From contig JAUPSS010000011.1 of assembly GCA_040285825.1 (NCBI GenBank), positions 558,001 to 622,000 of the forward strand: a stretch of 64,000 nucleotides of DNA, in the 5' to 3' direction. The translations under genes and the position numbers were made by a program. Every line of letters begins with the position of its first letter. Position 1 is the stretch's first letter. Source of the DNA: Eukaryota sp. TZLM1-RC (taxonomy: Eukaryota > Protista > Metamonada: BaSk clade). The notes under the pieces are model-generated. The model had not been told where the DNA came from. It did not search any database and saw only the letters and a program-made list of their open reading frames with translations. Shown here piece after piece: positions 10,837 through 64,000 of this stretch.

Positions 10837-11886
10837 TGTTGTTGTTGAACTCAAATTGAATTAGTAGTTTTATTAATAAACGTAGATTTCTCTCTCCTTC
10901 GTGTGTTCATCTGCCTAGCGGCATCAATAATTATTGGCCGTTCTTATTTCAGATGACTGTTCCTTCTGTCAACCTCCCGTCTCTTTCTTCCATGAAAGTT
11001 GAAAGTGTTCTCTTGTTCCTACAAGAGTGGAAGATCTATTCTTCTGTGACTTCTAAGAAAGAGCTTGTTCCAGCAAGACTCTTGGTCGATTCTTTTCTGT
11101 TAGAGTCCCTATCTCTCCAGAAATCCGACGTCTCTTCCAGTGACGATGTTCTTCTTAGACATCTACAATCTGTCGTATCGTTCGCCACGTACGAAGATTT
11201 TAGTCTGGCTATGTCAGAACTGAAGCTTGATGTCCGTATTGGTGACGTCCGAGAACGTATGTCCTGTTACCTGCGACGTTTCCTCCAGGTAAAGAGTAGG
11301 GCTTCCCGACTGAAGTTACCAGACACAGCTTTTCTGAATCGATTTGCCAGAGGAATTCTTCCCGTAGGTCTTCAACGTTCTCTACTAGCGAGAATTCGAG
11401 ATGATGTATTCCCAGATCTTCACTCTCTTGTCGAAACCACTACTGATGAGCTGTTGGACTGCTCTAGGGTTGCTTCATGGACTCGTGGTTTCAAAACCTC
11501 AGTGAATGATGTGGAACGTATGGCTGGCACTAAAACGAGGTCCTCTTGGCGCTCTCAGGATTTAAAAAATCAATAGTGCTTCAAGTGCCACAAGTCTGGA
11601 CACATCTCCCGCGATTGTCCAACTAGAATCAAACATGAGGTAAATTATGTGTGTCACACAAACGATGCACCAAAGAGTTTAACAAACCCCATTTCTTCCC
11701 TCTATTGAGCCAGTACTGTATTTGTCCTCAGAAAAGTGGGAAAAAGTAGTGTTGTTGTTGAACTCAAATTGAATTAGTAGGTTTCTTTGTATTTCGACTG
11801 ATGACGTGATATTCATTTATGAATCAGTTTTATTAATAAACGTAGATTTCTCTCTCCTTCGTGTGTTCATCTGCCTAGTGGCATCA
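10837..11886 (+). mobile_element. Non-autonomous gag-only LTR retroelement (1.05 kb)
   Basis: TG...CA LTRs at 10837-10926 (90 bp) and 11750-11886 (137 bp); polypurine tract AGAAAAGTGGGAAAAAGTAG just before the 3' LTR; 4-bp TSD TTTT. Confidence 0.88.
10953..11708 (+). pseudogene. gag: Gag-like ORF with a CCHC zinc knuckle after an in-frame TAG
   Basis: 207 aa ORF to TAG at 11574-11576, then in-frame CFKCHKSGHISRDC (CX2CX4HX4C) continuing to TGA at 11708. Confidence 0.78.
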
Positions 11887-12344
11887 TTTTTGGCAAAACA
11901 GAATAGTATTTTCAATTTTCAAAGGTGTTGTTCCCTTATTATCTTCAGCTTTGTTATCTCTTGGACGCGTTTATGAAAGAAAAACCTCCAGTCAATTCTT
12001 CTTGGCTGACTTGGGTTATGAAGACATAGAATTTTAACCTGGTCGTTTACTTTGTTTTTTTTTGGAATAAATAAAAAGTTATTTTAAGAAAAGTTGATGA
12101 TAATAATATCACTTTATGTCATTATTCCTCTGAAAAGGAATCGCTAAGTTCATTTCAAAAATCACTAGAAACTTACAATCCTCATAAAATATGTGGCATC
12201 ACTACAGAAAATTGTCATCCCACATTTTATCAAGCGGTGTTAAAATGAGGACTTTGTCAAGGGTGAATTCCATCCTAGTGAATGGATTAAACAGTTAATT
12301 CAAATTTAATGGAATTGAATTACAAACGTTTTTAATATGACACG

Positions 12345-12433
12345 AACTGCAAAAATATCGTGTATCAAAGAGCCTCTGCTGAAGGAAACACTGTCATTGA
12401 ATATTTTTGGTTCTGATGATTGAGGTGATGTAC
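12345..12433 (+). mobile_element. Short subfamily A non-LTR fragment
   Basis: Matches the ISCIKEPLLKET...GSDD segment of copy 1..806. Confidence 0.7.
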
Positions 12434-12904
12434 AAAGAGTTATTATTACTATTAAGTAATGTGTATTATGTTATAACTTTTATGTTTTGCTTCTCTACTG
12501 TCTTCACACGATAAAATATTCAAATTAAGAAGAAAGCGGAATTGTGGCCGGAAAGATACATTTGCCCAGATGCTCTTTTGAGGAGTTGAATGGGGAACCT
12601 GAGCATACAGAAACAAAAACTTTGGAAAAACTGATATTTTATTTTGAGTTTATTATTATTTTTAATTTTTTTGAAAAACTTTTGAAAACGATCTACAAAT
12701 ACCTTAGTGGCGTTTGGTAGATCCAATTAGATACAGTAAGTCGCGAGGCTTTGTTCTGTGAAAGCAGTAGGTGTATTCAAGTGAGGTAACCCATTGATGA
12801 AGATCATGATTGTCTTTGTCAAATGACGCTACATGTCTCTTACAGCCTGTGAGTAGACATTGAGAAAGTTGAAAACAGGAGTGAATTTTACAGGGGAATT
12901 TTAC

Positions 12905-13270
12905 AAGAGAAACATAGAAAATATGACAAAGGTATCGAAGAAGCTAATGCTGATAGAAATAGACCACTTGTTTTTATTGCTTTCCTATTTTCGATAAACG
13001 GAAGACTAACAGTAGAAGCAGTAATTTTTCTGAAAGATTTCCAAAAAAATGGTTAAAGAAAAAACAATGAAAAGATTTGATAACTCTTTATGGCGTTATC
13101 GAATTCAATTTGCCATTATTAATAGATTACCTTGGTTTTTCAATCGAATTAGAGAAGCTTTAGCTAGACAGCAAGCAGATCAAGATTTTGTAGAGGAAAT
13201 CTTGGTTCCATGAATTCCGTCCCAAGGTACGATTTTATTTTGTTAAAAAGGCAAGTTCAATAAATTATTT
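12905..13270 (+). mobile_element. Subfamily A-like non-LTR 3' end
   Basis: KHRKYDK...QQADQDFVEEILV, 3' UTR and AATAAA. Confidence 0.8.
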
Positions 13271-13330
13271 AATATCACAAACACTTGAACCCTTTAATTA
13301 CTGGCCGATTTGTTGTTGACACTTATAGTA

Positions 13331-13852
13331 TGATTCCTTTGGTAAAAGAAGGGCAGATTTAGTAGCTCCAGGGATCGATGGTGTTCTCCATGTTGTAGAT
13401 GTTGTCTCAGTTGATGTTTGCAAAAATTCTGCTGCTCGTTTAGTGTATTCCGCTGATTCGCCGTTATCTAATGCCGAAGAAAGAAGATAAAAAAATATGA
13501 AGAGCCTTTGGCACAGTTAGGTAGAGTGGAACATGTGAAATATCATTTTGTGCCGTTTGCAATTTCTCTTTTTGGCAATATTGGACCTTCAGGGTTGCGC
13601 TTTTTTGAGAATTTCAAAAGAGTGTTACTGAATAGGTCTGGTAAAACAATGAATTCCACTTTCTGGTTAAATAGAATTGTTTTTTGCATTTTCAAGTCTA
13701 ATTCAACAATGATTTCAAAGGCACTTTTAGCTATTGGTGTAGAATATGAACGTAATGCTGTGAGTAGGTTCAGTAATAGTGACGCTTGTTTGGAGGATAT
13801 TGAATTCTAGATAGATTTTTTTGTCTCAATAAATATTCCAGTTAAAGAAAAT
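13331..13852 (+). mobile_element. Non-LTR retrotransposon subfamily E, 3' fragment
   Basis: KRRADLVAPG, FVPFAISLFG and FWLNRIVF motifs; TSD ACTTATAGTA at 13321-13330 and 13853-13862. Confidence 0.88.
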
Positions 13853-13909
13853 ACTTATAGTATTTACACAAATTACTAAGAACCACGCAAATTAAAAACA
13901 ATTTCTAAA

Positions 13910-16006
13910 ATGTTATTAGGAAAGAGTAAAATTGACCTTGATCCTCAGTGTATTGCAAAGTAATGGAAGGTTCCTGAGGATGATCCCTTATCAGATTTTT
14001 CCTTATCCCAAAGAAGAACTACAGTTACAGTTTATTGTCTGAGGGATACAAATGTAACCAAGAAATTATTTAATTTCTTTGTCATTACCAATTCTTGAAA
14101 ACTGTTAAACATAAACCTTTTGATGGTTATAAGGACATTCTGAAAACGTCATCAGAGATCCGAAAATGCTTGACGTGATCGATGAGGCAATAATTAGGTG
14201 TCAGGAAATTTCTATTGTTGGTTTAGAATTCATTTGTGGTTATTATTTGCATCTTTTTGGCTTAAACCCTAATACTTTACTAAAAATTGAAACGCAATTT
14301 TTTCGTGACGCATTTCATGTGGTCACGTCTCAAAGTGAGGAGGAAAGTTCTCTTAGTTCAAAGACAAAAACAGCTTTATACAAAATTCTCGTTGTGCGAC
14401 ATTGTTAAAAATTCTATCACCAACACTTTAAAGACAAACTTGTTCCAAAAATTTTATCAAAAAAAACAAGTAAGATTTTGCATTACACAATTGACAAACT
14501 TATTGTGAATTTCAAAAATAACATCCAGGAGCATTACCTTGATTACTTGGATCAGTTTGGAAGTTTATTGTACTTGTTCTTTGACGAATTCAAGGACGTT
14601 CTTGGTCCAAAGTCCTCATACCGATGCAATAATCAAGCTGCTGTTTTGGTTCAATGGGACACCATTTTAAAAATCGACGAGATTAAAAACACTGAACTTT
14701 ATTTAGAGAGTTCCAAGTACATCGTGACTAGCATTGAGACTGATGGAATAGCAGTATCATTCGTACAATCTAGAATTGACTTGAAAAAATACAAAGTAAC
14801 TGCATAAGAATTCTAAGAAAAAGAAAAATATACTATTGATGACCCCAGCATCAATCCTTCTGAATTCCAAGATATGACCCTTGCTGCTGCTGATCCAGGA
14901 AAATCTGATCTACTCTATTTTTCTGCCAATTTAGCTACTGGAATGACTCATTCAAAAAAACCTGAGAGAGATAAATATGTTCATTTCGGGTGCACTCAAA
15001 ATCAACGAAGATTTGAGTCGAAAAGTTCCAAATTCAAAAGAATAAGAGACAGCAAACGGAATGACTCTCCTATCACAATAAGTAACTCTACTGGTAGAGT
15101 GATTGATCTATCCAATTATGAACCATCTGAAGAGCAACAACAAAGAATGGATTTAAACAGCAGTATAATTAATCAAATGACTGAAAGAACAATTAGTTTA
15201 TTAAGAGGAAAAGAACCTCAAAAAATCAATATTCTCCATGAAATTGATTACTCATCAAATTTGAGAAATAATGAACAAAAAACCTAAATCTGTAGCAGAA
15301 TGGGAAGCAACATTATCCCAATTTAATTTCAAAAGCTGCAGGTTTGACAGATTTATGGAGTATATTAAACAAAAGAAATTTTGTGAATAGTATTGTTGGT
15401 CAAGTCTATCATCAAAAAAGATTTAGGAAACTAAGATGAAGGGCTGAGATTAATCGCACAAGATCTGAGGCGATAATGATTCAGAGATTCAAATCAGTAA
15501 TTGGTGATCCCAGCCAAGTAGTTATTGGAATCGAAGACTGGGAACAACGAAAACACATGAAATTCAAAGAACCTACCAAAGGAAAAGGTTTGAGAATTCT
15601 ATTGAAAAAGGCTCGTTATAAGGTCTTTTTAATTGATGACTTTCGAACCAGTTGCTGTTGTTTCAACTGTAAGAAAGCGGAGAAGACAGTTGAAACATTC
15701 CAATGGTGCAGAAATCCTAGGCCATGGAAGAGGCACGAGATTTCTATTCGTCACGGGATTACCATGTGTAAATCATGTGAAAGTTTGTGGATTAGAGATT
15801 GAAATGATTCGCTGAATATGTTGGCAGTGATGGAAGCACATGTAAAAGGTGGAGATAGACCGAAATACCTGCAGAGAGTCAAGGTTGACAAAGGTTCAAA
15901 GAAAAAGGTATCAAGGATAAAATCTTCAACTTCCCAAAAACTCAGTCCCTCTACATCGGTGTAAAAAGGACACTTATTTCATTGTTATAGACATCATCTG
16001 TAACGA
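13910..16006 (+). mobile_element. Fanzor1 element, family 1 copy 1 (disrupted ORF; left end undefined)
   Basis: IETDGIAVS; RuvC-I AADPGKSDLL; GxxDWEQRKHMKFKEP; RuvC-II LIDDFRTS + CCCFNC; CKSC; RuvC-III WIRD*NDSLN; many stops and frameshifts. Confidence 0.85.
15940..16006 (+). ncRNA. Putative 3' part of the Fanzor omegaRNA scaffold / element right end
   Basis: Hairpins GGTGT-loop-ACACT and GTTATAGA-CATCA-TCTGTAAC (15984-16004), both conserved in copy 2 with different loops. Confidence 0.55.
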
Positions 16007-16441
16007 ATGGCTTCCATCGAGAAATCTCGTCTCACAGGCAGACCCATAATCCGTAATGTCAATGGAGACTGCTTTGTCGTCACTCCAACCGCCCAAACGC
16101 ACATGAATTCTATAGTACCTCCTCCAAAATCTGAGACACAACGTCAGTTCACACCACCTTCTGCTACCTCAGCTGGGGGTAAGGTTCAAGAAAAGCCTTT
16201 AATTCCATATAATCCGAACTGCTTACGTAGTATGGCAAAAATCCATGACCCACCCAAACGCTCTTGCCATGACACCAACCTTCCACGAGGAGCTCCCTGC
16301 CCATTAACCTGTACAGACAAGAAACGATTTATTACTTCTAAAATGATGAGTGAAAGTCAGAAGCAACAACCAACAGGTTTCGGTAATACCGGAATCCTCT
16401 CGCAACACACAAAGTTTATTCGTAATTTACAGAACTCTTAA
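16007..16441 (+). CDS. Hypothetical 144 aa basic, Pro-rich protein
   Basis: Clean ATG-TAA ORF with host-gene-like composition; no family recognised. Confidence 0.65.
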   Translation: MASIEKSRLTGRPIIRNVNGDCFVVTPTAQTHMNSIVPPPKSETQRQFTPPSATSAGGKVQEKPLIPYNPNCLRSMAKIHDPPKRSCHDTNLPRGAPCPLTCTDKKRFITSKMMSESQKQQPTGFGNTGILSQHTKFIRNLQNS

Positions 16442-16720
16442 AGTTATAATTATCATTGTATTTAGTTGATTACTACCATTAAACATGTATTTTTTGTTGC
16501 TTCTTTTTGCGTATGATTCATTAACCAAATCATGATTAATCATTACATTAAGTATATTTTGGTTTTATTCAGGAAAAAAACTTTAAATCTTGCAGATAGG
16601 ATTGCATCAAGAGAAAAACAAGATTTAAACTTGCTTCAAAAACCATGAAAAATCAAGAACCAAAAATAAATTCTAATTAATATTACACACAAAATCAATT
16701 CCAACACTAAAACAAAAAAC

Positions 16721-17461
16721 TCAAGAATCTTCTTCAAAATCTTCTTCATAACGTTTTTCAAGCAGTGATAACTCCGAAATTTGACTACAAGAATCATCAT
16801 CATCTGATGAATCGCTTGTGATTTGATTATCATCACGAGCCTTAGAGTCAATCAAACCTTTAATCAAATCACCTTCCTCTTTCAATTCATTTTGAACATT
16901 CTCAAAACCTAAAAGTCTCCTTTTAATCGACTTTATATAATCTACACTTAAACTTTCACCATCAAGCACTGCAACAAAAGCACCAATATTTTCACAAACC
17001 AAGTCTACAAGTGATTTAACCACAGAATCAGTTTTGAGTCTATATGATGAAAAAAGATGTTCAATTGACTTGGCGTGATCATTTGAAGATTTTCGAATGA
17101 GAGAGTGTTCAGGAAATTCTTCCTTGACTAATGATATGAACTTGTTCTGCCACTCAGTAGTCAACATTGATTTGGTGAGGGGTGAGGAGAGAAACAATGT
17201 GGTGGATAAGTGAGATATACCCAACAAGGACGTAAGTTGAGAGTCCTGACACACATCTGACTCCCAAGAAGTGAGTAAGTTTTTGAGAGAAGGTAGCACA
17301 TGGTGAACAGTGGAAGAGTCATTGGATAGGAGAAATAAGTGCCCTAAAGCACAAATATGCAGAGTTGAAGGAAAGAAAGGTTGGAGAAGTTTAATAAAAG
17401 CATCCAGGTCTTGGTCCTCAAGTGTTTCGAGAAGCAAGGAAGAGGAAGGACTGACAGTCAT
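16721..17461 (-). CDS. Hypothetical 246 aa protein with an acidic C-terminus
   Basis: Clean ORF, helical or coiled-coil character, D/E-rich tail. Confidence 0.65.
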   Translation of the reverse strand: MTVSPSSSLLLETLEDQDLDAFIKLLQPFFPSTLHICALGHLFLLSNDSSTVHHVLPSLKNLLTSWESDVCQDSQLTSLLGISHLSTTLFLSSPLTKSMLTTEWQNKFISLVKEEFPEHSLIRKSSNDHAKSIEHLFSSYRLKTDSVVKSLVDLVCENIGAFVAVLDGESLSVDYIKSIKRRLLGFENVQNELKEEGDLIKGLIDSKARDDNQITSDSSDDDDSCSQISELSLLEKRYEEDFEEDS

Positions 17462-17743
17462 TGTTCAAAGGATTGATTTTTTCAACTATTGGGTTTTTGA
17501 GGCAAGTAGTCCAGTTGAATGTTTCACATCATAGTTTAAAACTGCTTTTTTGTTTGCTTTTAATCCCAAATGTTGCAGACACCTTTATGAGCAGCTGAAT
17601 TGATACGTCAACATTATTGTTACTTTTCAAATCTGCCAAGTTTGAATTAATGTGATTGGTGTCCTCAAAATAATTGAATACATTATGTTTCTTTGATTTG
17701 CACAACGAAAAATCTTACTTCACGGATTTATTTACAAAGGCAA

Positions 17744-18217
17744 TCACATATAAGCTAATCTACTAGAACCTCCTCCCCCTCTGGGTTTTTTACCAACTTT
17801 GGTTATCTTTAAAGTGGCACCATATTCTACTTGTGGTATTAGTACTATGTGAAAAGGTTGTGTCAGAGCCATTGTGACCATTGCATCAGGTGGAGGGGAT
17901 ACATAGCGAATTGTGGCTGACACTGTTCTCCGATCTTGTGAAACCTCAACGTCTTCAATTGAAATAGCATGTCCACCAGTGCTGCACTGTCCGCAGAAGG
18001 CACACAAAACACTGTGTTGAGTAAAATCTATCGATTTATCACCAATATTGGGTACACGGCGTTTGAGATTATTCCACTGTTGTTCATTGGTGATCAGCTC
18101 TACAGACTCAGTGGATTGCTGACAATAAGCCCCACTAGAAAGAGTTTGCATTGATGAGTTGAATGCTAGTGCTTGAGAAAGAAGGAACGTCCAAAGTAGA
18201 ATAAAAGGATGAAACAT
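17744..18217 (-). CDS. Secreted PrcB C-terminal-domain-like protein (157 aa)
   Basis: Signal peptide MFHPFILLWTFLLSQALA; IDF...GQCSTGGHAISIEDV...PPPDAMVTMALTQPFHIVLIP resembles bacterial PrcB_C. Confidence 0.72.
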   Translation of the reverse strand: MFHPFILLWTFLLSQALAFNSSMQTLSSGAYCQQSTESVELITNEQQWNNLKRRVPNIGDKSIDFTQHSVLCAFCGQCSTGGHAISIEDVEVSQDRRTVSATIRYVSPPPDAMVTMALTQPFHIVLIPQVEYGATLKITKVGKKPRGGGGSSRLAYM

Positions 18218-18229
18218 TTGGAATTGTTG

Positions 18230-18871
18230 ATGCTGTGCTAGTGGGTAACGTCCAATTTCAAAAAACCTCAGCCATATCCTTTTGGATTTCAGCACCAATT
18301 GACTCCATTTATCCAATATCCTCCATGACAAAAAAATCAAAACAAAAGTTGTATTGAAAGAAAAACACAACACTATCTCCTCGTAATTCGAAGCACTCCC
18401 AAGCTGGGGATCTTTTGGGTTCAGGTGAGGTTTGGATGTCAAGTGAAGTAAAGGACGAGATTTCTTCATTACTGTGAACAGGAATGCCATTAATCGTTAC
18501 GTCGAAGAAATTGGACATCGTAGTGGAAATCGTAGTCATACATGATATGATACAGAAAAAAGAGTAACGTTCAATTGTTCATAGGTAAGTGTTACCGTTC
18601 CTTAACAGGATTTTTCTGCTATATATAGACATTAATTCAATCATTTATTCACTTTATTTGGTTCCACTTAAACTGTTGAAACCACTTGAAACGTATTTGA
18701 AAAAATCTCGTTTCGTTTGAATTGATAAAGTGAAACATCAACAAACTATGAGTCATCCATGGACGGTTAGGCTCAATCCCTGGAAAATCCATTCATTTGA
18801 GGAAATTTCTATCCATACCTGGCCAGATGGATTAGATGACCCAAAAAAATATATATCCATTGGTAGCTCTA
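18230..18871 (-). mobile_element. hAT-like DNA transposon 5' remnant
   Basis: Terminus TAGAGCTACCAATGGAT at 18871, subterminal ATCCAT/ATGGAT repeats, decayed ORF 18539- with BED-finger-like KRSPAWECFE. Confidence 0.5.
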
Positions 18872-18984
18872 TATAAAAGGCTGTTTATTAATCTTTAACA
18901 TTCAACATGTCAAATTGTAACTTATGAGGAAAAATGAAAAGCAATTTTTGATTTAATTAAATCTGATTTGATTGAGCTCTTCAG

Positions 18985-20740
18985 TTTTTTCTATCACTTT
19001 TATGGTAAAAAATCAGATTTTATTTTTAATTCATTTGCTTCAAAATCATTTTTTGGTGTGAAACAAGGCAATCCTTTAGGGGCTCCAATATTTCTTTTAG
19101 CTATTCACAAAACTTTAGATAACATTAAGGAATAGTACCCTTTCTCTAAAAATAGCTGCATATTTAGACGATATTTCTCTGATTGATTAATCTAATTTGC
19201 TGCCAAATTAATTTGGTAGCTCAAGAAATTCCCGATATGTGAAAATATTGGGCTTAATCTGCGGGCAAATGCCTTCTAATTGGCTCTTCTGCTCAAGACC
19301 TTTTGATTAATGATTCTGTTCTACCTTTTCCTATTCAAAGTAATGCTGCGTTCAAAATTATTGATTGTTGGTAATGAAATGTGCCTCAAATTTTGAACGA
19401 ACTACCAGGTATTTGGAAAAATATGAACATTGAACTTGATTCAATTTCTTTAGATCTAGAAAAACATATTAAATTTTTTATACTTAAATTGTTATACTGA
19501 GATAATATTCCACAATTTGAGATCTTGTGTGGGACCATAGTATTAAATTTCTGTCGATTCTTGAATTCATTGAGGATAGAATTCTTGCTGATTTATTGGA
19601 TGTAGATCCAGGAATGTTGAAAAATCATTTGTCTTTTGTAGCAAACTTTGGAGGTGTTGCTTTTACAAAATCCACTATGTGGTGCCATCCAGCATTTTTG
19701 GGTGGAGGCAAGAATTTTATCTATGAATTTTCTCGTTGATTTCTTGAAGACTCTAATTTGTTATATTCATACCAGTCCATATTTGAATGAGTTATCTTGT
19801 GAGCTTGAACGATTGCCACCCCAAATTTGGACCAAATGTTTCATTAATCAATTCAAGAAATTTTGGATCAATTTCTTTTTTGTTTACAGTTTTGCTGTAA
19901 AAATCTTCTGCAAAAAATTGCCAAAGATTTTGGAAAGCCTGGATTTTAATGTTGGACTTGGCTTTGGTAGGAACATAATCCACCTCTTAACTGATTCTTC
20001 CTACATTGTGAATATGAGACTTCATTCCATTTTCTGGCCTGATATTTTACCTCAAAAATTAATTTGTAAATGTAGTAGAAAAATTACAATTACTCATCTG
20101 TTAAATTGTAAACATTTTATTATTTTTAGAAGCAAAATTCATGATACTGTGAGACCAATTATATTGTATGTGTAAGTCTCATAGAATTGAATCCTTTTCT
20201 GTAACCTCTGTTGTTAAATCTGTGTGATGCTGAGGATGAATTCCATAAGAATAATAGAGGTGATGTCATATGACCCGGATTCGATGGAACCTTCATTTTA
20301 TTGGATGTAATGTTTGTTGATCCTTGTTATGCCTCAATTAAAAGGCTTGTTAATACTGAAATTCATTATGCTTTTTCAAATGCTGAAAATTTCAAAATCC
20401 AAAAATGTAATGAACCATTGCCCAAATTGTCCACCCAACAGCATGCAAAATACAATGTGTATTTTCTTTATTTGGTTCACTTGCTCCAACGGCTTTAGGT
20501 TTTGGCAGATTTTGACAATGATTGTAAAGAGAAGAACTAATAGAAACTTCAAACAGCTGGATTTGGCAAAATAGAATTGTGTTTTCCTTTTTAAGGGGAT
20601 GTTGAAGATAGTTTCTGATGCTTTGCTTTCTCTTGAATTTCACCATGAGACAATTGCATCTAGTTGTTTTGTTTTGAGAGAGATGAATTATTTAGATGTT
20701 GATCTATCAGTTTTTAATAAATAAATATATTTCAAGAAAA
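18985..20740 (+). mobile_element. Older degenerate subfamily B non-LTR copy retaining the RT core
   Basis: GVKQGNPLG and AAYLDDI at about 19055-19180, then thumb, knuckle and RLE fragments; A-rich tail. Confidence 0.85.
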
Positions 20741-20741
20741 A

Positions 20742-20968
20742 AAGAAAAAAACAATGAAAAGGTTTGATGTCGTTTTCCGGCGCTCTCGAATTCAATTTGC
20801 CATTAATAATAGACTGCCTGCGTTTTTCAATCGAATTAGAGGAGTTTTAGCTAGACATCAAGCAGATCAAGATTTGTAGAGGAAAGCTTTGTTCAATGAA
20901 TTTCGTCCCGTTAGTTAGGAATTTATTTTGTTAAGTAGGCAAGTTCAATGAATTAAATTATCAAAAAA
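20742..20968 (+). mobile_element. Subfamily A non-LTR 3' fragment
   Basis: RSRIQFAINNRL...QADQD and the subfamily A 3' UTR. Confidence 0.75.
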
Positions 20969-21090
20969 GTGAACCCCTTGATCAATCACTTAACATTTTT
21001 TTAAATTTAAAAATTTATTCCACAAGAAAAAGGTTAAAGAAAAAAATCTCATTTGATAACCACTTCACGCCAATTTAATTACGTAATGAG

Positions 21091-21876
21091 ATGCTACTGA
21101 GCTCTTCCACTGTGGTTCTACTTTCTCTCGTCTCTGTTTCTCTCTTTGTTTTCCTGGTTCAGTTGTTTTCTCCTCATCGTTTTGCTGTATACCGTCGTTC
21201 TCTAGGAGGTATTCTTGCAACTTTTCTTATTTTGTCCAGCTATTCCACAGCTCTCAATCATGTAAATTTCTTCAACCTCCTTCTCAGCACAATCCAATCC
21301 AGCTTTAGACTGTCATCCATTTTCATCCCTGTCTTTATCACCTCTATTCCTTATTTTCCTGATCTCATTGTGTATATTTCCCAATGTGTTGGGACCGGGA
21401 AACTCAAATTTATTAATTTTCTCAGTTTTAAAAGTCTCTACCCCCTTATTCTCCGCAATGTGGTCTTTGCACCCATTCTCGAAGAGTTGTCCTTTAGGTT
21501 GCCTTTCCTAGTGATCTTTAACTCTAAACTAATCACTTCTCGTTCCTTCCTAATAATTCTTTCTTCAGTTCCTTTCTCTGTTGCTCATTTCCATCACTTT
21601 TTGTTCCCTTTGCTGCGTTCCTTTGTTTTTGGTGGCCGTTATTCCCCTGGAATGACATTATCTTCTGCATTTTTCCAACTTTGTTACACTTTTATATTTG
21701 GTGTTTATGTTTCGTTTGTCTGTTTCAAATATGGAATTTTTGGCGCTATATTAACCCATTCTGTTGCGAATTTTGGTTCTATACCCAGTAGTTTTTTGTT
21801 AAATAAGTTTTATTTCTTTTTGTTTATTATTTGTTTATCTGTATGGCTTTTATTTGTAATCTATTGTCTAATTTAA
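21091..21876 (+). CDS. RCE1: CAAX prenyl protease 2 (Rce1)
   Basis: RNVVFAPILEELSFR, FSVAHFHH, QLCYTFIFGVY and HSVANFG motifs; hydrophobic. Confidence 0.9.
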   Translation: MLLSSSTVVLLSLVSVSLFVFLVQLFSPHRFAVYRRSLGGILATFLILSSYSTALNHVNFFNLLLSTIQSSFRLSSIFIPVFITSIPYFPDLIVYISQCVGTGKLKFINFLSFKSLYPLILRNVVFAPILEELSFRLPFLVIFNSKLITSRSFLIILSSVPFSVAHFHHFLFPLLRSFVFGGRYSPGMTLSSAFFQLCYTFIFGVYVSFVCFKYGIFGAILTHSVANFGSIPSSFLLNKFYFFLFIICLSVWLLFVIYCLI

Positions 21877-21901
21877 CATTTTTAGTAAATATTTATTAAT
21901 T

Positions 21902-22837
21902 TTATGATATAGAATGCAAACATAATTGTCGATCGTCACCCACTGAAACAAGATACTTTCCATCACTACTGATATCAATGGACCATACATGATCACTATG
22001 GGCATCAATGGTGGCTATACACTGCCTGGAACCCAACTCCCAAACCCTAATTGATCCATCTGCAGAGGAAGAGAAAAGTCGCTGGGATTCAGGGTCAAAA
22101 CAAAGGCTCAATATCCAAGATGAATGACCAACAAAGGTATCAACCAAAGAACCTGAAGCTACTTCATATATCCTTATTGACATGTCATCGCTACCAGAGG
22201 CGACATAGGTATTGTTAGGAGAGAAGACTGTCGTTCTACAGGGGGCAGTATGGTCATGAGCTTCAAAAAGCACTTGAGACCTTTCAAGGTCAATCACAGC
22301 CATGGTGCCATCACGTTGACCACATGCAATGTACCTTCCATCAGGGGACTTGGATTAGGAAGTGAGAAGGGGAAAACATACAAAGCATGTAGATATAACA
22401 AAGTCATTTCGGTTTATAGACTGGACCTTTTCTCGAGAATCAGTATTCCACAACGTGATTCGACCGACATGGCCTCCTGATGCTACCAAAGAACCATCAG
22501 GGCTCAGAGAAACTCCCCAAGTCTCTACAGGAGAAGGTTTGATCTCTGCAGTGATGGTACATGAGAGTGGATCAAAAATTTTTATAGATGAATCCATACA
22601 ATGGGCAACTGCAATAGAGGATTGTGATGAGGTTGCTATTTCAACTACTCCAAGAGCGAAATGATCAGCTTGTTGTTGAGAAAGATCGGCACTAGAATCA
22701 TCTGACAGAAGTTTTTGTATATCCCATGACTTGAGTGTTTCATCAACAGAACCAGTTAAAATCAGATTGTCACAAAACTTAACTGTCCAAATAGAGTCTG
22801 CATGAGCGTTGGGAGTTCTGTGAATGGTGCTGTACAT
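21902..22837 (-). CDS. WDR61: WD40 protein WDR61/Ski8; intron 22349-22381 (33 nt)
   Basis: AHADSIWTV...TGSVDETLK, HFALGVV, PVETW, GHSSWILSL, HSDHVWSI; removing the intron joins the two ORFs (STCF/SPDGRYIACG). Confidence 0.88.
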
Positions 22838-22984
22838 GAAAGTGTGAATGGATGTTTGTAGTTTTTGTGTGACTTTTTACCTTCGCACCGTCAGTGCGGG
22901 TGCGATAGGAGGTAAATCTTGAACAGATTATTGAAAGTTTTTATACGTTCTTTATCTTAAAAATTTGTTACTCAGGTTAAAGTA

Positions 22985-23371
22985 CCTACTACCGACTAAA
23001 ATTGACAGGTATAAAGCAAAGTTGCTATCCTTGAATGCTGATTCGCATACTCATTATGTCCTTTGTCCATTTGCTTTTCCCTACATGGCACGCTTGTACC
23101 ACTTGCTTTATCTTTCTTGGATGATTTTGTTGAGATTGTGAAACAACGCACAGGAAGAATTTTTGACAAAACGTTTTGGCAGAACAGAATTGTATTTTCA
23201 ATTTTTGAAGGTGGTCTCCCGTTATTGTTTTCTGCTTTATCATCACTTGAACATTTTTATGAAAGAAAAACTTCTGGTCAATTCCTTTTGGCTGATTTGG
23301 GTATGAAGATTTAGAATTTCAAAATTGTTCTTTAGTTTTTCGTTGGAATAAATTAAATCAGCAAAAAAAAA
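22985..23371 (+). mobile_element. Subfamily C non-LTR 3' fragment
   Basis: CPFAFSLHG...FWQNRIVF, AATAAA and poly(A). Confidence 0.82.
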
Positions 23372-23393
23372 GATTATTTGTAGATTTCGATTC

Positions 23394-24926
23394 TTTTTTT
23401 TTTTCTTATTTATTTTTATTCAACAACAAATATGAAATACACAATTAAAACTCCACATCCTCAAAACCTGCCTACCCTACATCAAAACGATTAATTGCTA
23501 AAGATTCAGAAAATTTCCCAAAAGAAGATAGTGAATCAGAAATTAGTTTTACCATTCCCTTAAAAATAGAAAATACAATCCTGTTTTGCCAGTAAACACG
23601 ATTGAAAATTCTTCCAGTTCTTTCCTTTACAACTACAACAAAATCCTCAAGGAAAGCCATAGCAGCCTTACCTAGAGATCCAAGCAAAGAAAAAACAAAT
23701 GGACATAAATTATATTGGGCATAAGAATTTTCATTAACCGAGGAAATGGGTTTCGCATATTTAGCAATTTTATATTTTTCGCCTGCAAGAAGAGGATTAT
23801 TTACATCCGAGTTAATGAAATGTTCGTTAGAGGAATTACAAGGGTCAATAGACATGGCGTCCAAAATAGTAAAACTACCATTTAAACCAGGAACAACTAG
23901 ATCACCTCTAGTCAGACCCATAGAAGCTCTGTTGTAACGTGTACTATCAATATTGGGATCATCAAGAATTAATTTTGATAACAGCGGTTCTAAAAAGGAA
24001 TCTACTCGATATGATTTGCACATTACATAAATTTGGTCCCTAACGTTATTATGCACTTTGCTTCTAAACGTAATGAAATGTTTACAGTTCAAAAGATGAG
24101 TAAACAAAAGAGGTTTACCACATTTACAAGTTAAATGATTGGGCAAATTGTTTGGCCACAGAAAACAACGAAAACGCATGTTTAGAAGCCATTCATTGTC
24201 TTTTAACAAAAGTCCATAAACAGAGGGAACTTGAGTTACTAAAGCAGCAGCTGAACTATCACGAATATCCTTTAAAAAATTACCGAAAGCGGGATTTTTA
24301 GTTTTGGCCAAGCCAAGTCTTACTTCATAATCCAAGCCTTCATATAATTTAACCAGATGGTGCTGAAGCTTTTTCAAGCAAAAACGTAAATTTGGAAGTG
24401 ATCGGGTGGGAATTTCTTGAACATTTTGAGGAAAACACTGAATCCAGATATCACTAGGCAAATTATCTAATTCGATTTGAAGTTGATTCAAATAACAATT
24501 TGATTCACCATTGATCAGATGAACATCAAAAGGAAACCTTTGAAAAAATTCAAAAACAAAATTTTTACCACCTCCTAAAAAAGCTGCTTTACACAGAATC
24601 GAAGATTTGGTGAATCCAATTCCACCCAAATCTGCTGAACAAAATACATGACTTCGAATTAAAGATTCATTTACTTCTAATAAAGAAGAAAAAAATTTGA
24701 CTCGAAGTTTGTTAAAAGATCTGCAAAAATTGAGAGATACCGATGGGGGAGTTGACCTTAAAATATGAGTGAATTTTCCAGAATAACAAATTTTTAAAAT
24801 AAAAAATTTGATGTGTTTCTCAATGTCACATTCAGCAATCAAACTAAGATCCTTGTCAAACTTCTCCAATAAATTGTTAAATGGGAATAAATTTCATCCA
24901 AATTGCCAAGCCAACATCCAAGAAAC
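23394..24926 (-). mobile_element. Non-LTR retrotransposon subfamily D, 5'-truncated, with an open 465 aa frame
   Basis: RT thumb, CKCx7Hx3C knuckle, RGDL..D..EKYK RLE; poly(A); TSD TTTCGATTC(TTTTT) at 23385 and 24927. Confidence 0.9.
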
Positions 24927-25692
24927 TTTCGATTCTTTTTGAATATTATTATTATCTGAAACAACTTATTTAAAATAACAATGTTATCTGATCCTCATCA
25001 CTCATCGAGCTCCTACATGGTTGATTGAAGACATTGGGCCTACCAATGAATGTGATGGATGGTTACTTCCTGATGGCTACTGTCGCTGACCTGAGTAACA
25101 GATGTTTTGAAGACGTAAGTGACCAATCAGTCAAACCTGTGTCAATCATATGAACGATAATTGACTGAGAATTAAGAAAGCCTTATTTCTAAGATGTTAG
25201 AATATTTTTGAGAGAAATTCCCAGAAATTTCAATTCTTAGGATGCTTATAGTGTTGCTTTAATTTAATCCAGTTGAATCAAACTGATTTCCACTTTTATT
25301 TAAACACTGGTGCACAACAATCTCCTTTTTTTACTATGAAAGAATTTTTCAAAAGTGTCGGTAATAAGTGAAAACTCTAGTGATTACACGGATCTTGAAG
25401 CTGCAAAAGTAAGTTAAATTTATTTATTTCATTTATATATGCATATATTTATCTAACAGTAATTAATTCAAAGTCCAAGCGTCTATTTAATGAACTTTAT
25501 AACAAATGTATGATTTAGCAATATAATCACATTAAATAAATCGATACCAATAAATAAAATAAAAATCTGTTTCAAGTACCCTACCAAGACCAAGGGTTGA
25601 ATGAAACAAACAGTCTGTTGATGTTATTAAACAAGTAAAACACAAACTCAATTTAATTAATTTAATAGTTTTTAAACTGAATTAAATCACCA

Positions 25693-28596
25693 TCAAGCAG
25701 ATACGAGCTGACTTAATGGTAATGAATGATGGGCTACCGAGAGCACCGTTGTAGCTTTTCTTATAAAACTAGCAACTATTGATAAGGAAAATGTGAATAG
25801 AATGGCAGGGTAAAGCCCTAGAGTTGAATAGAAAAACGAAATACAAAAAATTTCAAAAATAGCAAAGTCAAGAGATTTCCCAAGAAAACTTCTATTTTTG
25901 ATTGATGATTCCGTGGATTGTACAAGATTTGATTGATTGTGAATTGATGGACTTAATCTGAGCCATGATTCCACAAATGATTGCTTGATTATATGGTTTC
26001 CGGTTATCAACTCATCAATCCATTTGATTAATTGCCCATTTGCTTTTGATTGTACTTTTCCCAACTGCTCAAAAGAGTTCAATTCTCGAGAATCACGTTC
26101 GTTCTTGTTGAAAATGATTGACCGCTGTTGAAGAGCACGTGATCTAGCACGTGAGGCTGCTGCCCAAGAACGGTCAAAAATAGATCGATCTTGTCCAGTT
26201 AAAAAAACCTCAAATATTTGGCAATGATCATCTTCACCAAAACCAACTTTGTTGAGAGAAACACCTCGTTTAGGTAACGTTCCTCGACTTTCCCCAATCA
26301 AAAATGATGTCAGTTCTGAGCTGGTGACGTCAGACCTTCCTGCAACACTTCTGCCGTGAATATAAAAACCAGAGAAGGGCTCATCCAGTACAAGCAAAGA
26401 GATGTTGGTTAGTGGTAATAGATCAAGAAATCTGTTCAAGGGCGACTGATACACCCATCTATTCAAAGGAATTTTGACTAAATAGATAATAATGAATGAA
26501 AGGAGATATACAAAAGAGACAGTCCCTAGCAACAAAATAAATGATTCAGGAGCCAAATCAGAAACGGAAAGTGATGACAAAGACCAACGTGATAGTTGAA
26601 AATACCCCAGAATAAGGGAGGTCAAAAAACAAAGGGAGAAGGGATCACATGCTCTAATTGACTGTAAACTTGCCCAAATTTTGGCAATGTACACACTGCG
26701 CCAACAGGAAGGATTTTCAGAATTTTCCCAGTCAACTAAAAAAATGTCACTATAAAAAGAGGAAATGCAGGTCAAGAAAATTCTAATTGATGACGTGATC
26801 AAACAAATCAAAAAGACATTATAAACAAAAGAAAAAGATTCTTCATTTGGTAACAAAAGTACAATGATTCCTTGAAATCGAAAGACAACAAGGTAAAAAA
26901 GACTAACTAAAAGTAAAAAAACACCGAAATAGTTTGAAATAATTCTACAAATAGAATTGACTCCATTAAAGATGGAGTGGGAGAGAAAGGAATTGTTGAC
27001 GTGGCGTTGGTTGTAAACATAAAGATCCACTCCCCATCTTACTAGGCAAAGAGCGGTAATAGACCACAAGAGACCATTGGTAAGGGAAAGTAAAGTGGAA
27101 GAATCGGAAACTGTGTGGGATGAGAAAGTCGTGATTGGGAAGCTGCGACTAGAAACACGATTGTCAGTCACCAATGACGTGATGGGAGACAAGCTTCCCT
27201 TGTCGAGTCGGTCAAAAATGCCACTGGTCAATTCAATTCCTTCAGAATTCTCCAGACTAGACGTAATTACCTCTTCATACTCAATAGAAAGAATGGGAGG
27301 TAAAAGCAGAACTTTGCCCAACGACTGAGGAGTGGTTCTAAACATTAGGTCAACTTTCTTGGCGAAACGAATGACTGTGGGCGTGGTGGAAGAAGAAGTT
27401 GATCCAAAAACATGGTCAAAAAGGAAGAATCTTCTTGAAAGTGTCAAAAATGGGGAGGAAAGGTCATAATTATCATCATTATTGACCATTCTGACAGGAA
27501 CAGGAAGAAACTCATCATTGTAAACCAAAAACATTTCAGCAAAGAAAGGTAAAGGACTAGAACTAATCAAATCTAAAAGATCAAAAGTACACGTAATGTC
27601 CACGTCATTCCCAAAGACTTCCCAAGACTGATGCTTGACTTTCCTTGACTGTGACGTGGCGGTAACCCCACAAAAACTCAACAAACTAGAATCAGAGTAA
27701 CCCTTAAACTCACCATCTAATGCCCACAGACCCAATCTCAAATCAAGATTACTTCCAATGCCCAACACAGGCCAATCAGATGATTCCCTCAGAGCAGAAG
27801 CAGGGTCTTCATAAGTGACAAAGGGAAAATCATCAAGTTCAGAGATGGACTCACAGAGGGATGATTCAGAAGAAAAATAGGTGAGAGAGCAAAGGTTGAG
27901 GAGAGTGTTGCAAGGGGCCAAGGAGGATGAATTACCAACAAAAGAAGGATTCTCGAGCAATGTTTTGCATTGTAGATAAGCAGGACGGAAGAGCTGACGG
28001 ACAAGAAAGGAATCTACTGTGATTGGATTAGAAGAAGTTGAAGGATGAAAGGAAAGTTGGGAATGTGATGGAAACCTGGAGAGAACAGAAGTCAGATCAG
28101 CTTGCGAGAGGCAAGAAGAAAAGGCAAATGAATAGTCGGAAGGGCATTGACACTGGTCTTCAATAATGGAGAGGCCTCCACCATTGGAAGAGCAAGGAAG
28201 GCAGTGTTGGCTAGAGGGTGATGGTCTGACTGTGTTGGGAGGACAGGGTGAGCAGATGAGGGTTGAAAGGTTGGAGACTGTGAGGTAATCTGTTAAAGAG
28301 GGACAAGTACACTCTCCTTTGTTATAATCAGCCTCACATGGTAAACAAGATGCTCTATCAAGTGAAACAGCAGTAGTGTTGAGAGCACAAGAAACACAGG
28401 ATAGTGCTCCCTCATCACTACTAACAGTTGCATGGCCAGGGTAACAGGAGCATATAGAACCATCACCTAAAGAACCATCAGGACAAGTTTCACACTTTAA
28501 ACTAATAGGATGCAGATATTCATCTTCACTGCAAGTTGGACTAGCCAAAGAATGAAATAAGAGGATACTGAATGTGCAAAGCAAGAGCAGCTTCAT
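25693..28596 (-). CDS. TMEM67: Meckelin (ciliary transition-zone protein)
   Basis: Signal peptide, Cys-rich N-terminus, RRFFLFD, DIFLVDWE, WRSVYIA and GFYIHGRS motifs, multiple TMs. Confidence 0.92.
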   Translation of the reverse strand: MKLLLLCTFSILLFHSLASPTCSEDEYLHPISLKCETCPDGSLGDGSICSCYPGHATVSSDEGALSCVSCALNTTAVSLDRASCLPCEADYNKGECTCPSLTDYLTVSNLSTLICSPCPPNTVRPSPSSQHCLPCSSNGGGLSIIEDQCQCPSDYSFAFSSCLSQADLTSVLSRFPSHSQLSFHPSTSSNPITVDSFLVRQLFRPAYLQCKTLLENPSFVGNSSSLAPCNTLLNLCSLTYFSSESSLCESISELDDFPFVTYEDPASALRESSDWPVLGIGSNLDLRLGLWALDGEFKGYSDSSLLSFCGVTATSQSRKVKHQSWEVFGNDVDITCTFDLLDLISSSPLPFFAEMFLVYNDEFLPVPVRMVNNDDNYDLSSPFLTLSRRFFLFDHVFGSTSSSTTPTVIRFAKKVDLMFRTTPQSLGKVLLLPPILSIEYEEVITSSLENSEGIELTSGIFDRLDKGSLSPITSLVTDNRVSSRSFPITTFSSHTVSDSSTLLSLTNGLLWSITALCLVRWGVDLYVYNQRHVNNSFLSHSIFNGVNSICRIISNYFGVFLLLVSLFYLVVFRFQGIIVLLLPNEESFSFVYNVFLICLITSSIRIFLTCISSFYSDIFLVDWENSENPSCWRSVYIAKIWASLQSIRACDPFSLCFLTSLILGYFQLSRWSLSSLSVSDLAPESFILLLGTVSFVYLLSFIIIYLVKIPLNRWVYQSPLNRFLDLLPLTNISLLVLDEPFSGFYIHGRSVAGRSDVTSSELTSFLIGESRGTLPKRGVSLNKVGFGEDDHCQIFEVFLTGQDRSIFDRSWAAASRARSRALQQRSIIFNKNERDSRELNSFEQLGKVQSKANGQLIKWIDELITGNHIIKQSFVESWLRLSPSIHNQSNLVQSTESSIKNRSFLGKSLDFAIFEIFCISFFYSTLGLYPAILFTFSLSIVASFIRKATTVLSVAHHSLPLSQLVSA

Positions 28597-30143
28597 TCTT
28601 ATAGATATTATCTATAACTATGAAATAAGTGTCAATAGAGACACTGAAGGACTGAGTCTTTTCTGATTTATTTTCTCCTCAATACATTCTTTTGAACCTT
28701 CAACAACCTTGGCTTTTTGTTGGTATACCGGTCTATCTTCACCATTTACATGTGCTTCCATCACTGCCAACATATTCAGCGAAGAATTTCAATCTCTTTT
28801 CCACAAACTTTCGCATGATTTCCACATGGTAAGCCCGTGACGAATAGACATCTCTTGCATCTTCCATGGCCTAGGATTTCTGCACCATCGGAATGTTTCA
28901 ACTGTTTTCTCCGATCTCTTACAGTTGAAACAGCAGCAACTGGTTCGAAAGTCATCAATTAAAAAGACCTTATAACCAGCTTTTTTAAATAGAATTCTCA
29001 AACCTTTTCCTTTGTTAGGTTCTTTGAATTTCATGTGTTTTCGTTGTTCCCAGTCTCCGATTCCAATAACTACTTGGCTGGGATCACCAATTACTGATTT
29101 GAATCTCTGAATCATTATTGCCTCAAATCTTGTGCGATTAATCTCAGCCCACCACCTTAGTTTCCTAAATATTTTTTGATGATAGACTTGACCAACAATA
29201 CTATTCACAAAATTTCTCTTGTTTAATATACTCCATAAATCTTTCAAACCTGCAGCTTTTGGAATTGAATTGGGATAAAGTTGCTTCCCATTCTGCTACA
29301 GATTTAGTTTTTTTGATCAGTGTTATTCAAATTTAATGAGTAATCAATTTCGTGGGGAATATTGATTTCTTGAGGTACTTTTCTTCTTAATAAACTAATT
29401 GTTCTTTCAGTCATTTGATTAATCATACTGCTGTTTAAATCCATCCTTTGTTGTTGCTCTTCAGATGGTTTATAATTGGATAGATCAATCACTCTACCAG
29501 TAGAGTTACTTATTGTGATAGGAGTGTCATTCCGTTTGCTGTCTCTTATTCTTTTGAATTTGAAACTTTTCGATTCAAATCTTCGTTGATTTTGAGTGCA
29601 ACCGAAATGAACATATTTATCTGTCTCAGGCTTTTTTGAATAAGTCATTCCTGTAGCTAAATTGGCAGAAAAAGAGTAGATCATATTTACATGGATCAGC
29701 AGCAGCAACGGTCATATCTTGAAATTGAGAAATGCTAATGCTGGGTGATCAATACATTTTTCTTTTTCTTTGAATTCTTATGCAGTTACTTTGTATTTTT
29801 TCAAGTCAATTCTAGAATGAATGAATGATACTGCTATTCCATCAGTCTCAATGCTAGTCACGATGTACTTGGAACTTTCTAAATAAAGTTTCGGGTTTTT
29901 AATCTCGTTTATTTTCAAAATGGTGTCCCGTAAAACAAAATCAGCAGCTTGATTATTACACTGATAAGACGACTTTTGACTAAGAATGTCCTTGTATTCG
30001 GCAAAGAACAAGTCCAATAAACTTGTCTTGTCAATTCTGATATAGGAGGGAAAACAAGAATTTTGAAAAGGCAGAGCATGAAAGAGTTTGCTCTCATCAC
30101 CTTCTAAATAATTATTAAAATAGAACATGGCACTTAAACACAA
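28597..30143 (-). mobile_element. Fanzor1 element, family 1 copy 2 (5'-truncated, disrupted)
   Basis: Collinear with 14560-16006: IETDGIAVS, AADP, GIGDWEQRKH, LIDDFRTSCCCFNC, WKRD*N; same terminal hairpins (28599-28617 and 28628-28645). Confidence 0.87.
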
Positions 30144-30174
30144 ATTAAATTTTGAGGAAGAATTAAATTTTGAA

Positions 30175-31060
30175 TTAATGTTAGACTTGGTTTTGGTAGG
30201 AACATAATCCCGCTTTTGCAGATCTTTTTACAAGATATGTGTGATAGTACATCTTCTGCTTGAGTAACAACAATTCCTCAAGTTTATGGCACTCTCTTAA
30301 CTGATTCTGCTTGGACTTTGAATATGAGACTTCATTCCATTTTCTGGCCTGATAATTTACCTCATAATTTAATTTGTAAATGTAGTAGAAAAATTACAAT
30401 TACTCATTTGTTAAATTGTAAGCAATTTATTACTTTTAGGAGCAAGTTTCACGATGCTATCAGAGACCAATTATAGTGTATGTGTTTGTCTCATAGAATT
30501 AAACCTTTTCTGTAACCTATGTTGTCAAATCTGTGTGATACTGAGGATGATTTTCATAAGAACAAAAGAGGTGATATCATATTACCTTGATTATATAGAA
30601 CCTTCATTGAAGTGGATGTAATGTCTGTTGATCCTTGTAATGTCTCACATGAAAGGCTTGCTAATTCTGAGATTCATAATCCTCTTTCTAATGCTGAAAA
30701 TTTCAAAATTAAATGGTGAAATGAACCTTTGTCCAAATTGTCAGCCAATATCATGCAAAATACAATTTGTATCCCGTTTTATTTTCTCTTTTTGGTTCAC
30801 TTGCTTTTCACGGCTTTACGTTTTTGGCAGATTTTGAAATGATTGTAAAGAAAAGAACCAATAAAAGTTTTAACAAAGTATTTTGGCAAAATAGCTTTGT
30901 GTTTTCTGTATTTGAAGGAATGGTGAAGATGGTTTCTGATGCTTTGCATTCTCTTGGATCTCACTATGAGAGAGTTGCATCTAGTTGTTTTGTTTTGGGA
31001 GAGTTAATATATTTAGATGTTGATTTATAAGTTGTTCAATAAATAATTGTTATTAAAAAA
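30175..31060 (+). mobile_element. Degenerate subfamily B non-LTR copy
   Basis: Homologous to 2612-3700; ends in LDVDL, AATAAA and an A tract. Confidence 0.83.
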
Positions 31061-48510: not shown

Positions 48511-48990
48511 ATGGTTTCCTTTATTTGCTCAGTATGTAATGCCACTGTCAAAAAGCCCAAGGTTAAAAACCATCGTTGTCACAACTGTACTTTTTGTTGT
48601 TTAGATTGTCAACAAGAGTTTAATCACAACTCAGTTCACTCTCACAATTCATGTATATCAGAGGCAGAGAAATACCAGGGTGCATTATATAAAGACAAGA
48701 AGAAGCGTAAGGCGGTACAATCTGATCAGCCTGTAGTAAAAGCTCCACGTTCTTGCAGCTCTTCAGCCTCTTCCTCAAAAACAAATACTCACTATCCTCA
48801 ACAATGTCATCATTCTTGCTCACTATTGGAGGACAGGATTGTCGAACTCATTCGCAGCAACTCTGACAGTACTCTCACCATTAAGAAAATTTCCAAGATG
48901 CTTCGTCCTCTCATCAAGGAGTGTGTCACCCATTCGAAAACACTTTCCTTGACTGATGAAACTGTCTCCTTGAGCGACAAATCATGTTAA
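48511..48990 (+). CDS. LYAR: LYAR-type C2HC zinc finger nucleolar protein
   Basis: MVSFICSVCNATVKKPKVKNH...CLDC...HNSCISEAEKYQG. Confidence 0.88.
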   Translation: MVSFICSVCNATVKKPKVKNHRCHNCTFCCLDCQQEFNHNSVHSHNSCISEAEKYQGALYKDKKKRKAVQSDQPVVKAPRSCSSSASSSKTNTHYPQQCHHSCSLLEDRIVELIRSNSDSTLTIKKISKMLRPLIKECVTHSKTLSLTDETVSLSDKSC

Positions 48991-63896: not shown

Positions 63897-64000
63897 AAGA
63901 TTTAGAATTTTGATTTTTGTGTACAGTTTTTGAAAGTATTAAATTAAAAATTTTCTAAAAAAACGATTTTATTCAATAATAAAAATTAAAATAGACAGTA

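Follow-up and report, generated by a model that had tools for sequence, protein, structure and literature searches.

The Fanzor1 genes described so far are carried by Mariner, Helitron, Sola, IS4-like or MuDR elements, mostly with recognisable terminal repeats and duplications (PMC3627910). In the published cases a non-coding guide RNA is located at the 3' end of the Fanzor gene and reaches the right end of the element (PMC10530073, PMC10432273). The persistence of Fanzor and TnpB elements is commonly explained by cleavage of the empty site, directed by a guide that is a copy of the element's flank, and the literature that we searched ties none of them to a functional landmark of a host gene. 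Here we analyse a Fanzor1 family with two copies in a stretch of 64,000 nucleotides (nt; "the window" hereafter) of contig JAUPSS010000011.1, assembly GCA_040285825.1, from Eukaryota sp. TZLM1-RC, and with further copies at 12 other loci of the same genome (L001 to L012). The organism is the type strain of Skoliomonas litria; this anaerobic, free-living metamonad comes from a soda lake in Tanzania (PMC11603281), and the sister group of the Skoliomonas lineage is Fornicata (10.1101/2023.05.03.539051). A preceding inspection of the window by letters and open reading frames (ORFs) alone, the sequence-only reading, had proposed that both copies end exactly at host start codons and that the family inserts at (A)ATG.

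The protein encoded by this family is homologous to the characterised Fanzor1 proteins SpuFz1 (Spizellomyces punctatus), PpFz1 (Parasitella parasitica) and GtFz1 (Guillardia theta) and shares the RuvC D/E/D residues and the zinc ribbon with them. The ORF at L005 5001-5771 was matched by phmmer to the solved structures of PpFz1 (9CF0, E 1.6e-9) and SpuFz1 (8GKH, E 1.9e-6), family members match PF07282, and both copy 1 and other copies show the RuvC D/E/D motifs, with a C4 zinc ribbon that precedes the last RD. An intact relative of 645 aa, 40% identical to the family, is found in a metagenome (L015 2909-4846, contig Ga0326734_1000668) and matches 9CF0, 8GKH and 9CER (GtFz1 among the solved structures) at E 7e-39 to 5e-11; its contig is densely coding, possibly viral, and uninformative on start codons. 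In contrast to the described Fanzor1 elements, the Skoliomonas family is fixed at start codons, shows no terminal inverted repeats, duplication or recognisable transposase, and carries, in its long copies, an additional region upstream that resembles the exonuclease of DNA polymerase B (PolB).

With the IS200/IS605-TnpB elements ("peel, paste and cut the empty site") the Skoliomonas family shares a nuclease gene at the right end and a right flank that is the predicted guide. It may further share the absence of a target duplication (judged from two left ends), a subterminal right-end hairpin (in some copies) and a TGT motif at both boundaries (left TTTGT..., right ...TCTGT). As in bacterial TnpB, any omegaRNA would overlap the 3' end of the coding sequence. 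Unlike IS200/IS605, the Skoliomonas family resides in a eukaryotic host and yielded no Y1 HUH transposase (TnpA): there was no Pfam family in the left ORFs, no usable Atlas match and no HUH motif in the ORF of ~106 aa. Furthermore, IS200/IS605 constrains the left flank only, whereas here the right flank is constrained and always reads A-ATG-purine. The Fanzor survey and classification literature that we searched makes no mention of start codons or of the 5' ends of host genes, and literature searches for start-codon-targeting transposons returned nothing relevant. Within the literature searched, placement at start codons is not described for any Fanzor or TnpB element.

Right ends of the family adjoin host start codons

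A self-BLAST of the window aligned copy 1 (14561-16009, plus strand) to copy 2 (30024-28594, minus strand) at 89.6% identity, and the alignment terminates on an ATG in both, at 16007 and 28596 respectively. The two junctions read as the sequence-only reading had quoted them, and its description of both host ORFs as intact and co-oriented with the element proved correct. One host gene encodes meckelin, with a hydrophobic signal-peptide-like N-terminal segment that begins at the junction ATG; a search with the meckelin N-terminus returned the query itself as the sole match. The other encodes a protein of 144 aa with an ortholog in Skoliomonas sp. GEM-RC1 (GEMRC1_007324, 142 aa, 57% identical), which is colinear from residue 14 with equal N-terminal offsets and thereby marks the 144-aa ORF as a real gene. 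The statement that the terminal block precedes no other gene of the window also holds, as a 23-nt version of it occurs just twice in the whole window (0 expected by chance).

The loci outside the window bring the total DNA analysed to ~215 kb. Nine of them were located by protein search with the C-terminal Fanzor ORF (annotated fragments) and three more by a query with the left-end ORF; broken Fanzor ORFs entered these searches as separate pieces only. Counted in this way there are 16 right ends, namely 15 of the main family (two in the window and 13 outside) and one of a divergent family, 69% identical, on the opposite strand of L007. A co-oriented ATG follows directly after the right end in 16 of 16. 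If orientation were random, the co-orientation of all 16 would have a chance of 2^-16. The family thus behaves as a site-specific element would, with unrelated host genes, a fixed orientation and an ATG 0-5 nt from the right end in every copy. Even degraded or internally deleted copies (L003 632-528, L010) all retain the right end. Besides the two window genes, the host partners include XRN1, a galactokinase-like protein, a PP2A-like phosphatase (Metallophos), Tctex-1, a TPH-domain protein and a WD40 protein. The link between start codons and this Fanzor1 family is genuine, extends across the family and goes far beyond what chance could give.

Any scenario in which the ATG merely forms the final three nucleotides of the element, with downstream ORFs and annotated starts that are coincidental or mis-called, can draw on a single fact: the ATG is invariant in all copies, so the alignment alone cannot separate it from the element. 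The downstream sequences, in contrast, speak clearly. ORFs of 106-1356 codons are opened by 15 of the 16 junction ATGs, where a random ATG in this base composition would open 100 codons with a chance of ~6e-4 (own estimate). The junction ATG is also the annotated gene start for 10 of the 13 main-family copies outside the window and for the divergent copy. At L003 6963 the ORF is XRN1, which begins at its universally conserved first residues: the XRN_N profile (positions 1-241) aligns to residues 1-224 with profile position 1 on residue 1, hence the junction ATG is the native XRN1 start. The same can be said of the 144-aa gene through its colinearity with GEM-RC1; for both genes the conclusion is drawn from protein sequence comparison. 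The signal-peptide-like segment of meckelin points in the same direction. True start codons elsewhere, and terminal ATGs that mostly open no ORF, both outcomes that the sequence-only reading had regarded as fatal to its proposal, are therefore not what these genes show, and the artefact scenario is effectively refuted. The junction ORF at L004 5530 is galactokinase-like, with the galactokinase signature at residues 7-35; the annotated start at 5611 is 81 nt (27 codons) too late and would cut this signature. The annotated Fanzor fragment model at the same locus (5001-5570) overlaps the true start at 5530.

Our preferred reading, to which we assign a probability of roughly 0.6, is that an old, now inactive Fanzor1 family inserted, always facing the same way, within the last few nucleotides before host start codons, where integration would have been aimed at the leader, the element end would supply the host promoter and the predicted guide would run into the host gene. 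A retention filter alone is a possible but clearly less probable explanation. Here any occurrence of some short, common motif would serve as an insertion site (behind TGT or ahead of AATG, for instance), and the survivors would be those with an outward promoter placed against an ATG, while other near-gene positions kill expression and neutral copies are deleted. Leaders of 1-14 nt, read without scanning, exist in Giardia (PMC3610916) and make such a filter plausible, as does the fact that left parts are heavily eroded while right ends are always kept. Neutral sites, such as those ahead of a complete promoter or in the intergenic DNA 3' of genes, would still be expected to hold copies, and none were seen: a fuzzy search for the terminal block across the ~215 kb found no further genuine copy, no counter-example and no free-standing right end. 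The proposal that the family ends at gene starts rather than mostly at non-genic sites has thus survived the larger sample. Many other old repeat fragments persist in the same loci, which argues against fast deletion, and all 16 copies are co-oriented at the same offset of 4-5 nt.

Junction tails and the element boundary

All junctions have the same layout. The element is conserved to ...ATCTGT, after which 4-5 nt in discrete classes, always ending in A, lead to the ATG. Among the 16 copies these tails read TTCA (5), AAGA (4), AACTA (3), AACGA (2), AATA (1) and AACA (1), and they are less conserved than the remaining element. A subfamily origin of the tail classes was considered and rejected. 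The tree of the copies is star-like, with end branches mostly of 0.03-0.08 (each copy being 3-8% diverged), and the tail classes have virtually no supporting substitutions across 1200 nt of element body: a single diagnostic column for the TTCA group (rank 24th of 715) and none for the AACTA group (rank 101st of 286). Without support in the body, the tails were not inherited like the rest of the element.

Instead, the tails track the host. In groups that were defined after the data had been seen, the base following the ATG (+4) is A in 6/6 copies with TTCA or AACA tails and G in 6/6 copies with AACGA, AACTA or AATA tails, while AAGA copies are mixed; a like trend between positions -2 and +4 is found at ordinary gene starts in the sampled sequence. 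Position -1 is A without exception (16/16, versus 39% of ordinary ORF starts), which points to a target requirement or to a transcription start. Because the tail classes ignore the phylogeny and follow the host +4 base, the boundary of the element is probably located 2-5 nt upstream of the ATG; in other words, at least the last 2-5 nt are probably host leader sequence or were made at insertion, and the element would end just short of the ATG. The claim of insertion at (A)ATG start codons stands with respect to placement, which all 16 right ends support and which in 15 cases involves an ORF of 106 codons or more, but it probably needs to be shifted by these few nucleotides. As the target, (A)ATG cannot account for the specificity alone: A-ATG is present at all junctions, but AATG is far too common.

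Around ~50 ordinary genes of the window and of L001 to L012, TGTWWC as a host attachment motif before the start was not enriched (1 observed vs 0.4 expected). CTGT is ~3-fold enriched at -16 to -4 of starts (7 observed vs 2.0 expected) in the same small sample of ~50 ordinary genes; it also forms the final conserved bases of the element and, as a lead only, might be an initiator-like motif.

The conservation of the right end bears on yet another scenario, in which the right-end block is itself a mobile promoter cassette that spreads by recombination or conversion as a good core promoter, and the Fanzor gene is a passenger remnant. Two observations fit: a 33-nt terminal block is far better conserved between the two families than their bodies (69% identical), and a solo right-end remnant exists (L003 632-528). 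Within the family, however, the last 60 nt show no extra conservation and divergence is uniform along the element. Nearly all copies also carry >600 nt of contiguous Fanzor sequence upstream of the block, and in the window the block stands before no gene other than the two hosts. We consider a cassette of this kind very unlikely.

Proposed roles of leader, promoter and guide

Since both AATG and A-ATG-purine are too common, some feature whose distance from the ATG is fixed must be recognised, or else viability must act as a strong filter. This feature would most simply be the transcription start of very short leaders. If Skoliomonas resembles Giardia in this respect, integration would have been aimed at the leader and transcription-start region, or at the opened promoter, within a few bases of the ATG. 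A viability filter would then sharpen the position, as the host AUG must stay adjacent to the new transcription start.

The preferred reading also assigns a role to the element end. All inspected copies are dead, yet partners such as XRN1 must be expressed, and the element end is hence most likely the present core promoter. The last ~45 nt would suit this role, with no upstream ATG and, as seen in the terminal block of copy 1, a TATA-like TTATAGA ~24 nt before the ATG. The displaced host promoter would in turn have driven the element's own genes. Bacterial insertion sequences with outward promoters offer a parallel, in that the end of the element would supply the promoter of the adjacent gene; they differ in that their distance to the gene varies, while the Skoliomonas family is fixed at 4-5 nt, and in a eukaryotic host. 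The closest precedent for start-site-directed integration is Ty3 of yeast, a long terminal repeat (LTR) retrotransposon that TFIIIB directs to sites only a few bases from where RNA polymerase III begins transcription, and that makes duplications. Ty3 is likewise placed to the nucleotide by a transcription landmark and not by a long DNA motif. In contrast to Ty3, the Skoliomonas element is a DNA element, sits upstream of protein-coding genes and does so in one orientation.

Where the premature TGA is absent, 28-41 nt separate the stop codon of the Fanzor ORF from the host ATG, so any omegaRNA scaffold would have to overlap the coding 3' end. By analogy with described systems, the predicted scaffold would have overlapped the 3' end of the Fanzor ORF, the guide would have consisted of the host leader, the ATG and the first codons, and an active copy would have cut empty alleles at the gene start. 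This idea of guide and homing derives from established TnpB/Fanzor biology (PMC10530073, PMC10432273). The fullest version is a homing element parked between transcription start and AUG, whose guide spans the start codon and first codons of a needed gene, whose end replaces the promoter and whose Fanzor gene is driven by the displaced host promoter. We regard it as tentative, with the odds well against it. If it were true, safe repair of a cut empty allele would be achieved only by copying the element, as sloppy repair would destroy the gene start; this would be a natural form of the logic "target an essential gene and bring the rescue". A companion idea, equally tentative, is that promoter DNA opened at transcription starts is entered in a strand-specific manner.

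The consequences of such a placement reach beyond this family. It implies that some integration machinery can locate where a protein-coding gene begins, with an accuracy of a few bases and always facing the same way. It would provide a natural case of a predicted guide that corresponds to the first part of a host coding sequence, and genes such as XRN1, the PP2A-like phosphatase and meckelin now have to rely on a transposon end for their expression. Transcription start, leader length, promoter replacement and homing thereby become testable in a little-known metamonad lineage, for which suitable data from this organism and its sister strains are available.

Several observations weigh against this reading. 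Ten of the 16 copies come from loci located through annotated protein fragments, a possible source of bias; the same placement is seen in the two copies of the window, two found as by-catch (L003 525 and the divergent copy of L007) and three found via the left-end ORF. One junction ATG, at L007 5449, opens an ORF of 41 codons only. No transposase was recognised in the element, Pfam being blank for the left ORFs. When 14 copies were aligned over their final 220 nt and folded, the structure contained 20 pairs and no compensatory changes. The terminal hairpin that the sequence-only reading had placed at the right end (in copy 1 a 10-bp hairpin that includes the tail) is clear in AAC-tail copies only; copies with a TTCA tail, like the divergent copy, show it weakly or not at all. 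Finally, all copies inspected carry stops or frameshifts and there is no intact gene among them, which makes the placement a fossil of past activity.

Anatomy of the element and neighbouring features

The coordinates of the two window copies, their host genes and the parts of the element are listed in Table 1.

Table 1. Features of the Fanzor1 copies in the window and parts of the element; positions refer to the window unless a locus is named.
Feature	Position	Strand	Basis or remark
Copy 1, left part, broken up	9149..13331	+	PolB-exonuclease-like fragments 9149-9372 and 12090-12327; family segment 13252-13331; nested repeats between
Non-LTR retrotransposon nested within copy 1, 5'-truncated, A-rich tail	13332..13852	+	11-nt target duplication ACTTATAGTAT at 13321-13331 and 13853-13863
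Fanzor1 copy 1, contiguous right part, pseudogene	13853..16006	+	Self-BLAST, motifs; PF07282 and PDB Fanzor1 matches in family members
Copy 1 RuvC-I, DPGK	14892-14903	+	Catalytic motif
Copy 1 RuvC-II, IEDW	15530-15541	+	Catalytic motif
Copy 1 zinc ribbon, CCCFNC...CKSC	15653-15778	+	
Copy 1 RuvC-III, RD	15794-15799	+	Catalytic motif
Copy 1 premature TGA	15800-15802	+	Directly after RuvC-III RD
Copy 1 right-terminal block	15969..16006	+	Conserved to ...ATCTGT at 16001, then 5-nt tail AACGA 16002-16006
Host gene of copy 1, conserved protein of 144 aa, function unassigned	16007..16441	+	ATG 16007 is the first base past the element
Host gene of copy 2, meckelin (TMEM67 family), 967 aa	25693..28596	-	PF09773, E 3e-85
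Fanzor1 copy 2, pseudogene with frameshifts	28597..30175	-	Left side cut off or interrupted at ~30175
Copy 2 right end		-	...ATCTAT and tail AAGA
Copy 2 premature TGA	28791-28789	-	
Element part 1 (leftmost), conserved ORF of ~106 aa			Function unassigned
Element part 2, region with HW...D motifs			Recalls C48/Ulp protease; weak lead
Element part 3, DNA polymerase B exonuclease domain	L005 3763-4431; L007 2487-3154; window 9149-9372 and 12090-12327		PF03104, E 3.4e-7
Element part 4, Fanzor1 gene			~650 aa

The copies that extend furthest to the left, L010 and L011, have a common left terminus (8710 in each locus), where TTTGTAAC follows unrelated flanks; other left ends are located 100-200 nt further in or are deeply truncated. 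Target-site duplications are absent at the two left ends compared (L010 and L011), and no terminal inverted repeats were found in the element. TGTAAC is found at the left end and recurs at the right end of five copies, which may be meaningful, with only two left ends to judge from. A Helitron was considered and rejected: the left end TTTGTAAC and the right ends (...CGA, ...AGA, ...TCA, ...ATA, ...CTA) do not follow 5'-TC/CTRR-3', and there is no RepHel-like ORF in the furthest-left copies. The Atlas gave a weak C48-protease lead for one left ORF and no other usable match. The C48-like region and the PolB exonuclease may form one long intron-containing gene. Rfam returned no relevant match for the 3' region of the element.

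The staggered left ends invite an RNA-mediated scenario, in which a reverse transcriptase copies the host mRNA to its 5' end, adds a few untemplated bases and switches to the 3' end of the element RNA, before the chimeric cDNA converts the locus. Staggered left ends look like 5' truncation, the variable 4-5 nt between the fixed element end and the ATG could be the untemplated bases, and the genome is rich in reverse transcriptases. Such a scenario would require several rare steps at each of many loci. Moreover, the downstream host genes keep introns (judged from annotated gene spans versus product lengths), no poly(A) and no duplicated parent genes were seen, and L010 and L011 share one precise left terminus, as expected for a DNA element. 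We consider it very unlikely, at about the same level as the promoter cassette. A tie of the family to the 3' ends of long interspersed nuclear elements was likewise rejected, since the non-LTR copies of the window end in A-rich tails at unrelated sites. The non-LTR fragment nested within copy 1 has sister copies in the window at 37506-38024 and 63376-63910.

Both window copies are pseudogenes with in-frame stops and frameshifts. At the position of the TGA that follows the RuvC-III RD in both of them, other copies have CGA (Arg) and read RDRNASLNM, which identifies the TGA as a nonsense mutation at a CpG and not as a recoded codon. The L010 copy (8710-10242) is internally deleted to ~1.5 kb, retains ~1.38 kb of the left end and the last 155 nt, and adjoins a gene of 450 aa; either a non-autonomous version of the element or a deletion that occurred in situ could account for it. 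The segment L007 5449-6752 spans ~1.3 kb between two Fanzor copies that belong to different families and point towards one another, one of them adjoining a WD40 gene (minus strand) and the other the 41-codon ORF, possibly the remnant of a lost gene.

Two further divergent Fanzor fragments were found. At L012 5569-4778 (minus strand) a fragment has RG in place of RD at RuvC-III, and a co-oriented gene lies 310 nt downstream of this single copy. In the window, a third Fanzor remnant (47897-48268, plus strand) has a C-terminal part that is 30% identical and ends in ...WSRDISASLNQ...; a co-oriented LYAR-type zinc-finger gene (48511-48990, plus strand) lies 243 nt downstream, a distance measured from the fragment of a single copy.

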